Assembly: GCA_039096225.1 (NCBI GenBank)
Contig: JBBPEB010000005.1
Location: forward strand, 124,001-188,000
Direction: 5' to 3'
Length of the DNA stretch: 64,000 nucleotides
Origin: Blastocystis sp. Blastoise
Taxonomy: Eukaryota; Protista; Bigyra: Opalinata
Shown: positions 17,185-29,043 of the stretch, piece after piece
How positions within the stretch are numbered: position 1 is the first letter of the stretch
Layout of the letters: the number at the start of each line of letters is the position of its first letter
Made by a program: the position numbers and the translations under genes
Notes under the pieces: generated by a model
Database searches by the model: none
What the model was told of the DNA's origin: nothing
What the model saw: the letters and a program-made list of their open reading frames with translations, nothing else

Positions 17185-17697
17185 AAATAATAATAATAAT
17201 AATAAATCAATAGATAATCCTGTTGAATCTACTTATATTCTTCCTTCTACTCCTTCTACTCCTCTTCCTCTTATAGATCCATCGAATACAACATCTGTCT
17301 CTTCTTCTCCTTCTACTTCTACTCCTATAAAACAAAACACACAACAATCTCAACTTACAAAAGACACGATGAGTATCTCTTCTTCTTCTTCTTCTGTTTC
17401 TCTCTCTTCCTATTCTACTAAATCAACAACACCTACACTATCAAATTCTAATATTATAACTACAAATAATAATAATAATAATAATAATGTTAATAATAAT
17501 AATGTTAATAATAATGTTAATAGTGATAATAATGTTAATAGTGTTAATAATAATAATAATGTTAATAATAATGTTAATAATAACAATAATAATGTTAATA
17601 ATAACAATAATAATGTTAATAATAACAATAATAATGTTAATAATAATAATAATGTTAATAATAATAGTAATAATAATACAGCAACTACTACTAATAA

Positions 17698-17735
<38 letters not shown>

Positions 17736-19627
17736 ATACTACTACTACTAAAAATAATAATACTACTACTACTAATAATAATAATACTAATACTACTACT
17801 AATACTAATAATAATAACACTAATAATAATACTTCTCCTTTATATCCTATTTCTACTTCTTCTTCTTCTTCTTCATTTACATATACATCTATGCCTCCTC
17901 CTATTCTTAAGAATGTTCCTATAGCTCCTGCTCCTGTTCCTCGTTCTTCTTCTCCTTCTCTTTCTTCACTCCTTCCTTCTTCTTCTTCTTCTTCTCTTCC
18001 TTCTCTTTCTCTTCCTTCTCTCTCTTCTATATCAAATACTATTAATAGTAACTCAACAATCAACTCTAAACAACTCCATCTTAATCTCCAAGAAGATGCA
18101 TTGAATGTCTCTATAGAGGATTCCATACTCACAGGAGAACAGATGGAAACACTCAAAAATCAATGTATACAACTTATTAAATATCTTATTGATAATAAAA
18201 TCACACTCCTTAAAGTTGAAGAACTCTCTATTCTTCTTAGTATATATTTTATTTTATTATTTATTTTATTGTTTTCTCTATCTATATATATATATATATA
18301 TTATCTATCTATCTATCTATAGATATAGATTGTTCTCGACTCCATATTATTCTTGAAATATATAGTTTATTAGGATGTATTGAAAAGTATGAGAAGGAAT
18401 ATTATTGGAGAGGAATGCATTGTGTCATCAACACATTACGTGAATATAACGAACGACGTGTCATTCTGACACTCCAGAAGAAAAAAGGGAAATTAATTAC
18501 CGATGATCTTCCTCTTCTTTCTACTAAAGATACTGTATATTATTATTATATATTGTTATATATTATATAGGGTATATATGATGTAGTATTTACAAATATG
18601 CAATTTGGATTAGAAGTAAAACAGAATGAAAATGATTTATGTGCTTATTCTATTGTTATTAAACGTACTATATATCAGAATGCTTCTGCTTCTTCTCCTT
18701 CTGATTCTCTTATTTCAGAAGGAGATGTTATTCGAGGTATTTATGGACGATCTTTTGCGGGTATATAACTATATATCTATTATTCTAATATTTATTATTC
18801 TATATATTTAATATTCTATATTATTCTATATAACTATATATATATTATAGGATTATCTTTTTCAGATGCTATTGATATATTAAAAAGAGAGACACGTCGA
18901 CCTATTACTATTTCTTTCAAACAAAAACGATTTACTGAAGAACTTAAAGTATATATAATAATCATATATAATAATAATAATAATTATTATTATTATAGTT
19001 TGATAATAAACCAATTCCTATTCTATATGCAATCACAAAACGTCTTCTTTGTGTATATATATATATATATATATTATAATATATTAATAATTCTATTATT
19101 TATAGTATTTTTATACAAATTCAGAATCAATTTTACCTTTAAAAGAAGTATGTACTCAACTTCATACAGAATTTCCTATTTATTCTCTCTCTTCTATTGG
19201 AAATAAAGTTCAAGAAATACTCTCTATTCTTCATGTATTCAAATTCCTAGATCTTCTCTCTTCAGAAACACCAGAACCTATTATGAATATTGTTCCTACG
19301 TATTATATTAAATATATGGAAAACTTATCTTATGATGATTGTTCTTCATTAGTTCTTTTCCCTTCATCTTCATCTTCTTCTTCTTCTTCTTCCTCTTCTT
19401 TCTTCTCTATTAACACACATCCAACATTACTTAGAAAAGATAGTAATACACTTCAAAGGAAAACTATTAAAAAACCATTCAAAAAATATAATCCAAAAAT
19501 TCCACAAAGTCAACCAAAACCATGGACATGTCCTTGTGGATATAATAATCGATTCACTTTTGATATATGTGCCAAATGCACAGCTCCTCGAGATCCTTCT
19601 ACTGCTATTAATACAAATAATAATTAA
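16401..19627 (+). CDS. Low-complexity protein with two degenerate E2F-like winged-helix domains, a PDZ-like domain and a C-terminal RanBP2-type zinc finger
   Basis: Six GT-AG introns give a continuous frame. WTCPCGYNNRFTFDICAKCTAPR zinc finger; QFGLEV...EGDVIRGIYGRSFAGLSFSDAIDILK PDZ pattern. E2F7/8 similarity judged by eye. Confidence 0.7.
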
Positions 19628-19904
19628 ATGTTATAGTCTTTTTTTTTATTTATTTTTCTTCTTTTTATTATTATTTTTTTAAATATAATACAACTTTTTC
19701 TTTTTTTCCAAAATAATAATCATTTTAAAATATCATTGTTTTGTTATTTTTAATATTTTTTTGATTTTAAAATAATAATAAGAAGAATAAATAAAAAAAA
19801 ATAAAATAATAAAAAATCCTTAGAATAACAAAACAAAACATATTTTTTTTTTACCAATATCAATTCTTCTTGCTTTTGAATTTTCAATAAACAAACTATA
19901 TGAT

Positions 19905-20662
19905 TTAGAACATACGGAATTGTTTACGAATGTTAGATAAACCCTTGGATTGTTGAGCAACATGATCAAGGACATTGAAACGAACAGTCTTAGAAAGAGG
20001 TCTGCATTGACCAATGGTAACAATATCACCTTCCTTTACATGGAAAGCAGGAGAACAGTGAGCAGCAATGTTACAATGTCTCTTTTCATATCTTCATATT
20101 TATAATATATTATTCAATTTATATATATTCAAATAAATTATATAATTTAATATAATAATAATAATATTTTAATAGAATTTTAAAAAAATATATATATATA
20201 TATTTATTTATATATCTTCTGTACTTCTTGATGTATTGAAGATAATCACGACGAACAATAATAGTACGTTGCATCTTAGTAGAGATAACAAGACCTCTAA
20301 GAATAGCACCACGAATACTAACATTAGAAGTAAAAGGACACTTCTTATCAATGTAAGTTCCCTTAATAGCAGTTTCAGGAGTCTTGAAACCTAAACCAAC
20401 ATCACAATACCAACGTTGATTACCACCTTTTTTACCTAAAAGATGAGCCTTACGGGCAGAAAACATTTCTTGCTTTTGGAAAGCAGTTTCATTTTGTTTA
20501 AATGTATTATTTGATTATAATAATCTATTAATTTACAGCAAAAAAAGGAAAAATAAAAAAGAATAACGATGAATTAAATTAAAACATCTCAAAAAAACAC
20601 AATCCACTCTCTCTAACTTTAATATAAATGTTTGTATATACTTGTTCGATAAGTTCAGCCAT
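19905..20662 (-). CDS. RPS11: 40S ribosomal protein S11 (uS17), 3 exons
   Basis: MAELIEQ|NETAFQKQ...[18 protein letters not shown]...KYR|RYEKRH...[14 protein letters not shown]. Exons 20662-20642, 20493-20216 and 20091-19905. Confidence 0.96.
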
Positions 20663-21449
20663 GTTTGGAGCAAAAAGAAAAGACTTAATACGGTTGTATA
20701 AACTTTAGAAACAAAAAAAAATAACAAAGGAAATTTTTCTCTCCTGGGGGTATTTATTTTTACTTAAGATTCCACTATTATTTTTTAATTTCTACCCCCT
20801 GGATTTTTATTTTCTTTTTCCTAAAAAAACAAAACAAATAATCAAGAATATTACTTTTTTTTGCCCTATTTTTTCATAATAAACCTTGTTTCTTTTTCAT
20901 TCTTTTATTTTATATCAATAGTTTATGATTCAAATGTTTTTACAAGTTATATTTATGGTTTCATGTTGAGAATGACTAGTTCCTACACATATATCTTAAT
21001 CAAATTAAAATAAGTACATTACGAAATGTCATTTTTATTTGTTATTATCTTTATGATATTTTGATATATTTGATGATAACAAGGTGTTCTATTTGATTCA
21101 ATGATTCAAATTATTTGGTAAATCAAATTTTTAAATTTGTAGAATTTATTTATGTCATTATTGCAGAATTAATATGTCATTTTAATCAATGTGTGACTGA
21201 GTCTTATCTATATCTTCAAAATTGTAAAAATTATTACATATTTGTTATTTAAAATTTTTTTTTGTTGTATAAAAGGTTAATATACTGTAAATTTAAAACA
21301 ACATTTCATATAAAAACACAGAATAGCCTATTCTTGTTAATTTTTAAAGACATAAATCCAAAAATATATATATAATCACATTGAGAAAAGATCAAAATAA
21401 TAGAAAAATAAGAAAAGTTATAATATTATGATTATTTATTGCATTGAAA

Positions 21450-29043
<7,594 letters not shown>

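Follow-up and report, generated by a model that had tools for sequence, protein, structure and literature searches.

An AG at the 3′ end of the intron is near-universal and ranks among the most constant signals of eukaryotic gene expression. The nonconventional introns of euglenids and diplonemids have no GT-AG ends; short flanking direct repeats make their exact cut ambiguous, and the mechanism of their removal is unknown (PMC12501133, PMC12621601, PMC3935182). These introns also require inverted repeats near their ends (a CAG/CTG signature); the two ends pair with each other, and the excised introns are circular (PMC12501133, PMC12621601, PMC3935182). The non-canonical introns and introner elements of Amoebophrya vary widely in their terminal dinucleotides and have 3-5-nt direct repeats spanning their boundaries (PMC7789003), and the non-canonical U2 introns of Fritillaria borealis are, according to the account cited there, thought to be processed by a modified major spliceosome (Henriet et al. 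2019, cited in PMC7789003). Within Blastocystis, the intron classes on record are GT-AG, GC-AG, GA-AG and U12-type AT-AC, so that non-GT donors and abundant minor introns have already been recorded in this genus (PMC5608401). In contrast, U2-type introns with non-AG acceptors, or with acceptors that copy the end of the exon, are described in neither PMC5608401 nor PMC12129017.

The window analyzed here is a stretch of 64,000 nucleotides from Blastocystis sp. strain Blastoise. It is AT-rich, with about 24% GC, and comes from a genome of 33.3 Mb in 34 contigs. The isolate Rus-B, from a Russian tortoise, has a genome of 33.3 Mb with 23.1% GC (PMC12129017), and we infer that strain Blastoise is this isolate. 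The minus strand of the window encodes the ribosomal protein RPS11 (uS17) in three exons, and both introns have unusual ends. The features of the gene are given below in window positions; X1 is a public run from the same strain, and the paralog is a second copy of the gene described further on.

To at least 20683, minus strand: RPS11 5′ UTR, from the loose end of an X1 contig.
20642-20662, minus strand: coding part of RPS11 exon 1 (MAELIEQ), from its translation, the N-termini of the ST1 and ST7 proteins and an X1 contig.
20642-20646, minus strand: exon-1 copy of the direct repeat AACAA, a 5-base match upstream of the junction, seen as 5 ambiguous bases in the RNA contig.
20494-20641, minus strand: RPS11 intron 1, 148 nt, GT..AA, phase 0, from the RNA joint between 20493 and 20642.
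20494-20498, minus strand: copy of the direct repeat AACAA at the 3′ end of intron 1, the same in the paralog, where the repeat is 7 nt.
20216-20493, minus strand: RPS11 exon 2, encoding Ribosomal_S17_N and the start of the S17 domain, with 0 differences from the paralog.
20212-20219, minus strand: 5′-junction copy of the direct repeat GAAGATAT, 4 exon and 4 intron bases, for a total repeat of 8.
20092-20215, minus strand: RPS11 intron 2, 124 nt, AT..AG (GT..AG in the paralog), phase 2, from the sequence and comparison with the paralog and other subtypes.
20088-20095, minus strand: 3′-junction copy of the direct repeat GAAGATAT, 4 intron and 4 exon bases, read from the sequence.
19905-20091, minus strand: RPS11 exon 3, coding from 20091 to 19908, with the stop codon TAA at 19907-19905, from the sequence and translation.
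19852-19904, minus strand: RPS11 3′ UTR, the mRNA ending at about 19851-19854 by RNA contigs and depth.

The translation of exon 2 matches Ribosomal_S17_N and S17, and its top database match, at 100% identity, is a protein of strain Blastoise. The ST1 and ST7 proteins (P0011 and P0017) have the length and layout of the spliced RPS11 model and align with it residue for residue; their N-terminus reads MADIQEQ and then NQAAFQKQ, and KKYRRYEKRH is also present. The initial annotation had claimed that the conserved protein is made only if intron 1 runs from 20641 to 20494 with GT..AA ends and intron 2 from 20215 to 20092 with AT..AG ends, and these coordinates were borne out, as were the arguments given for them. 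The upstream AG (20526-20525) is unusable, since the frame after it meets a TAA at 20517-20515. Conserved residues would be removed by the nearest canonical pairs that keep the frame: NETAFQK is lost when GT 20641 is used with AG 20474-20473, and the three residues YRR are lost when GT 20224-20223 is used with AG 20093-20092. Joining the outer GT to the outer AG yields MAELIEQI and then a stop. Both public models of RPS11 in the Blastoise genome avoid the odd splice sites. The model of the window copy (P0001) starts at an internal Met within exon 2 and uses the cryptic GT 20224, with the loss of three residues, and the model of the paralog (P0121) takes an ATG inside intron 1 as its start; both are wrong, having been broken by the non-AG end of intron 1. 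Our analysis adds to the initial annotation the direct repeats at both junctions and the extension of the phenomenon beyond RPS11. The 5-base AACAA match at the end of exon 1 was reached by none of the null positions, and the repeat at the intron 2 junctions, 8 nt in total, has a P of about 0.008 against the null.

About 30% of the sampled words of the stretch were present in four public runs, which is the share expected from the exons alone, and these runs were placed on positions 19600-21000 of the window. There was no depth within either RPS11 intron in any of the four runs. The contigs of all four end at 19846-19874, with zero depth beyond, which coincides with the 3′ end of the mRNA and indicates that all four behave as RNA, including two that had been taken for DNA. 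Run X1 showed no differences from the window. One of its contigs joins 20642 to 20493, skipping 148 nt, with 5 bases that fit both sides and 24 nt on the exon-1 side; these 24 nt and a further contig that extends to 20683 correspond to the window copy and not to the paralog, which differs from it at 20648, at 20663 and throughout the 5′ UTR. The window copy is therefore transcribed, and splicing of its intron 1 takes place at the AA end, so that the RNA check called for by the initial annotation was passed at this intron, and the AA end of intron 1 is shown to be a working non-AG acceptor. For intron 2 the same check was passed in part. Contigs of runs X4 (record 21, 415 nt) and X3 (records 18 and 19) join 20221 to 20095 with one base between, which amounts to the removal of 124 nt inside the 8-nt repeat with YRR kept, and this YRR-keeping junction between exons 2 and 3 is carried by contigs from two relatives. 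However, these contigs fit either gene copy, since the exons of both are identical; precise removal from the mRNA is thus copy-specific for intron 1 (X1), and for intron 2 it is seen as a joined form that is not assignable to a copy (X3 and X4). The AT of the window-copy intron 2 is accordingly a candidate donor, and the AT..AG form of this intron may instead represent a lesion. Both junctions of the RPS11 model also occur in a cDNA-like contig with a poly(A) tail from a relative that is 92% identical in protein. Contig L001 (ENA ERZ13405077, 1569 nt) is chimeric, with a GC-richer, unrelated coding stretch fused to an RPS11 transcript; its RPS11 part is intron-less and polyadenylated, comes from a related Blastocystis and reads MAEIQDQNEN...

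Comparison with other subtypes indicated the origin of the two introns. Introns occupy both RPS11 positions, with the same phases, in two ST1 assemblies, two ST7 copies and four metagenome contigs of ST3-like type: one follows the EQ codon (phase 0) and the other interrupts the second R codon (phase 2). These orthologous introns are all GT..AG, with CTAAC or CTGAT branch motifs. Since they share the positions and phases of GT-AG introns, both RPS11 introns of Blastoise descend from ordinary major-type introns and are not new insertions. The third RPS11 intron of the ST1, ST7 and ST3-like loci is missing from the Blastoise genome, and a search for RPS11 loci of other tortoise isolates through public protein models gave no match on record. 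As for the remaining hallmarks of the major type, intron 1 has the donor GTATAT, and the 5′ end of U1, loop 1 of U5 and the ACAGAGA box of U6 are canonical in the Blastoise genome; intron 2 starts with AT in the window copy and with GT in the paralog. At the 3′ end, intron 2 has AG and intron 1 has AA in both gene copies. Taken together, these data show that the non-AG acceptor of RPS11 intron 1 works, is kept in both paralogs and descends from an AG acceptor.

Several other intron classes were considered and rejected. For the U12 type, neither RPS11 intron has an RTATCCTT or ATCC donor, in agreement with what the initial annotation had read from the sequence, and neither has a TCCTTAAC branch motif, which would be expected 10-15 nt from the 3′ end. 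The sole U12 snRNA candidate in the genome (L012, C24:844725-844868) scores 46.8 bits against the Rfam gathering score of 53 and keeps the canonical stretch for branch-site pairing, and a scan of the window for the U12 donor motif gave 7 matches against 11.5 expected, none of them convincing as an intron. The RPS11 introns resemble those of euglenids and diplonemids in the direct repeats at their boundaries (5 nt and 8 nt, and 7 nt in the paralog) and in the ambiguous cut. However, introns of the RPS11 type keep GT donors, show no pairing of their ends by folding and are orthologous to GT-AG introns. A Euglena-type intron was rejected on the grounds that the RPS11 introns fold no better than shuffles and have no end-to-end helix and no CAG/CTG signature (published signature: PMC12501133); folding found no stable structure around the RPS11 sites (z +2.2 and -0.2).

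The likeness to Amoebophrya and Fritillaria, as far as PMC7789003 describes their introns, lies in the many different terminal dinucleotides and in the boundary direct repeats. The introns described there belong to repeated, transposon-like families with inverted repeats and occupy new positions, whereas RPS11 intron 1 is single-copy, has no inverted repeats and occupies an old position. An origin from introners or MITEs was likewise rejected: a search of the 33-Mb genome for copies of intron 1 found that it matches only itself, the introns 1 of the two gene copies are about 50% alike, and the positions are old. A ciliate-type genetic code or DNA elimination, which the AT-rich inserts with pointer-like repeats had raised, was also dismissed, the organism being Blastocystis, with TAA as a stop and GT donors kept.

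The second RPS11 copy lies on the same contig, 93 kb away in inverted orientation (G000:C31:51243-51518, L003). Its intron 1 is GT..AA, with a 7-nt repeat of its exon end, and its intron 2 is GT..AG; the AA acceptor of intron 1 is common to both copies, and the AT donor is private to the window copy. The initial annotation had named supply of RPS11 by a canonical paralog as an outcome that would refute it. This may apply to intron 2, where the paralog is canonical and encodes the protein with identical exons, but not to intron 1, which is GT..AA in the paralog as well. The upstream region and intron 1 of the two copies are about half different, indicating that the duplication is old. Zero differences were found between the copies over 20498-20216, which takes in exon 2 and the five bases of intron 1 next to it, and over 20104-19853, which starts 13 bases before the end of intron 2 and runs through exon 3 and the 3′ UTR. 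The copies differ by 11 events in the 111 nt of the intron 2 core and by 11 in 152 nt of flank past the mRNA end; the first downstream difference between the paralogs is at 19852, where the RNA contigs end. Two of the nine base substitutions in intron 2 fall within its first four bases (+1 and +4), and both are window-copy changes toward the first four bases of exon 3. The RPS5 paralogs also show identity that is limited to exons. The confinement of paralog identity to the mature mRNA suggests active RNA-templated conversion, and selection on codon usage could be partly responsible for the exon-only identity.

The initial annotation had also proposed a survey of ribosomal protein genes. We took a sample, most of the genes being present as paralog pairs, in which the junctions outside RPS11 were placed by protein conservation alone, and non-AG ends did recur. 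The acceptors are AA and GT in RPS5; GG, AT or GT, and AC in RPS23; TG in RPL23; and TG and CG in RPS18. Ordinary AG introns adjoin the odd ones in the same genes, and a GT or GC donor could be read in every case except the window-copy RPS11 intron 2. RPL23 intron 1 (C21) and the first introns of RPS14 (C14) and RPS18 (C3), whose placement requires RNA, did not enter the counts. At eight of the nine placed non-AG introns of this sample, the intron closes with the same dinucleotide as the upstream exon, the exception being RPL23 intron 2; the chance of such agreement, calculated as a product from the intron dinucleotide frequencies, is about 1e-13. RPS11 intron 1 thus belongs to a class whose odd bases copy the neighboring exon. 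The direct repeats reach 5, 7, 8, 10 and 15 nt against null means of 0.2-1.0, and some are just 2 nt. In two cases one paralog is canonical and the other has the exon copy, namely RPS18 intron 2, where the canonical end is AG, and RPS11 intron 2, on the donor side. The junction does not move in paralogs with 4-nt indels just upstream of the acceptor, an observation that speaks against the site being simply measured off from the branch point. An amino-acid-level copy of the exon at RPS23 intron 1 was considered and discarded: the bases are better read as real coding sequence, MGKGKPS, which we take to be as in the yeast protein, giving a GT..GG intron.

Ribosomal protein genes of this genome gave further observations. 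In copy C14 of RPS23 (L028, 648600-649600), intron 2 has a 15-nt perfect direct repeat across the whole exon-exon junction, and the paralog C16 has a repeat of only 2 nt and a junction 4 nt away; judged from the sequences, the intron looks as if it has shifted by 4 nt between the copies. An RPS14 intron that is GT-AG in copy C4 (L049/L050) is precisely missing from copy C14 (L048), and uL3 and uS8 have no introns within the range matched by Pfam. Together with the absence of the third RPS11 intron, these cases suggest ongoing precise intron loss. The small contigs C9 and C12 carry the same bacterial-type cluster of S7, S12, L14, S8, S11, S13 and L16 with equal scores (L018, L019, L026, L027, L032, L033, L041, L042, L051, L052, L059-L062) and are probably an organelle genome assembled twice or in two orientations. 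In the window itself, two long microsatellites lie in or beside neighboring genes, (AAT)n with about 121 units at 17465-17831 and (AT)n with about 126 units at 22143-22383.

The explanation that we favor, with our confidence evenly divided for and against it, is that these are old U2-type introns whose ends were overwritten by mRNA-templated conversion, and that the spliceosome processing them accepts a terminal base other than G. The odd intron-end bases repeat the exon across the splice (AACAA at intron 1, GAAG and ATAT at intron 2) and would hence not be random; the repeats may have been left by short conversion tracts for which spliced mRNA or cDNA was the template. These would hold the exons of both copies identical while extending a few bases into the ends of the introns, and near the looped-out intron, conversion could replace a few terminal intron bases with those of the opposite exon. 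The mRNA-confined identity of the RPS11 paralogs, together with the RPS5 pattern, fits repeated conversion by spliced RNA or cDNA. We infer that the major spliceosome is the processing machinery; that of this lineage, with its canonical U1, U5 and U6, would complete exon ligation without a terminal G, and the 3′ site would probably be placed by position and context rather than by AG. Among the three ideas put forward by the initial annotation, a spliceosome tolerating a changed terminal G is the only one that fits the evidence.

The Fink model, in which reverse transcriptase-mediated intron loss and cDNA gene conversion act on highly expressed genes, homogenize exons only and remove introns precisely, is close to this account. 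The likeness extends to the intron-less uL3 and uS8 (within the Pfam range), the RPS14 intron gone from one copy and the absent RPS11 intron 3. In contrast to that model, the RPS11 intron would stay and its terminal bases alone would be converted, and we know of no described case of an intron left in place with its terminal bases converted.

Tolerance of the altered ends has to be weighed against a reading in which the direct repeat serves as the signal, the 3′ site being chosen, at exon ligation or in a step outside the spliceosome, by its repetition of the end of the upstream exon. The eight matches among nine non-AG acceptors involve seven different dinucleotides, the repeats of 5-15 nt lie far above their null means, the junctions stay fixed despite upstream indels, and AG is kept otherwise, so that the terminal bases are not free. 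If the ends were merely tolerated, non-matching ends would be expected to be common, and the single one seen among nine hints that the match itself may be needed. However, no component is known that could read sequence identity in place of complementarity; the U1, U5 and U6 snRNAs are canonical, certain repeats measure just 2 nt, RPL23 intron 2 is an exception, and conversion scars would produce the same pattern equally well. We therefore consider repeat-read excision unlikely, and find slightly less credible still its fuller form, a splice code in which the last bases of the upstream exon, repeated, set the 3′ site and the start of the downstream exon sets the donor, the reader being the spliceosome or another partner. 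If true, excision that reads the repeat would be a new splice code. The exon-copy pattern would also be mimicked by overwriting of the assembly with spliced reads, the true bases being G and the intron ends miswritten, and two metagenome scans for independent DNA of the RPS11 junction found none. Such an assembly or polishing error is nevertheless very improbable: the DNA was RNase-treated, the library was PCR-free and several rounds of short-read (Illumina) polishing were applied; a newer ST1 assembly, probably from the same project's pipeline, equals the 2017 one at RPS11, with canonical introns; AT occurs in only one of two copies with identical exons; canonical and odd introns stand together in the same highly expressed genes; and many odd ends are common to both paralogs within otherwise diverged introns.

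For intron 2 of the window copy, a separate explanation comes fairly close to being an even match for use of the site: its AT donor would be a recent disabling lesion, the transcripts being mis-spliced (for instance at GT 20224) or retained and degraded, with the paralog supplying RPS11. The paralog has a GT donor there and exons so alike that no contig can be assigned to a copy, the window copy has in addition lost two C's from the 3′ part of the intron (20110 and 20105), the public model P0001 itself uses GT 20224, and in X1 the depth of the window-copy exon-1 contig is, as a rough figure, about one sixth of that of exon 2. Against a lesion, the window copy is transcribed with its intron 1 spliced, and its exons have no other defect. 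Turning to both introns, minor-spliceosome introns with unusual termini have in their favor that each RPS11 intron starts with RTAT and that U12 splicing tolerates varied 3′ ends. In Blastocystis, moreover, U12 introns number in the hundreds and the full set of four minor snRNAs is present (PMC5608401, PMC10639083). We nonetheless give this reading hardly any weight, as the introns have neither an ATCC donor nor a TCCTTAAC-like branch site, the U12 snRNA candidate keeps its branch-binding stretch, so that the motif should still be required, and the orthologous introns are U2-type with CTAAC or CTGAT branch sites. The initial annotation had suggested that splicing acts as a control switch for this gene, for example through NMD, or that A-to-I editing generates the splice sites, and both odd RPS11 bases are indeed A where G is expected, and skipping of exon 2 does lead to an early stop. 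The AT donor, however, is not conserved in the paralog, and non-AG ends also occur in RPS5, RPS23, RPL23 and RPS18, where editing cannot yield the AC, AT, TG, CG, GT and GG ends; there is no stable duplex at the RPS11 sites, and the skipped isoform, which the initial annotation had expected might be found, is absent from the contigs of the four runs, although contigs drop rare forms. A switch of this kind or editing is thus extremely unlikely.

Whichever way the ends are recognized, AA takes the place of AG, with RNA support, in a gene that is essential and highly expressed, and in a protist that can be cultured. RPS11 intron 1 arose from a normal GT-AG intron and close relatives still have the normal form, a comparison that the euglenids do not offer and that bears on how exon ligation finds its site without AG. 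Annotation of tortoise isolates that admits only canonical sites will break on many conserved genes. RNA-templated conversion, if true, would connect the loss of introns with concerted evolution among duplicated ribosomal protein genes and with the way in which odd splice sites arise.
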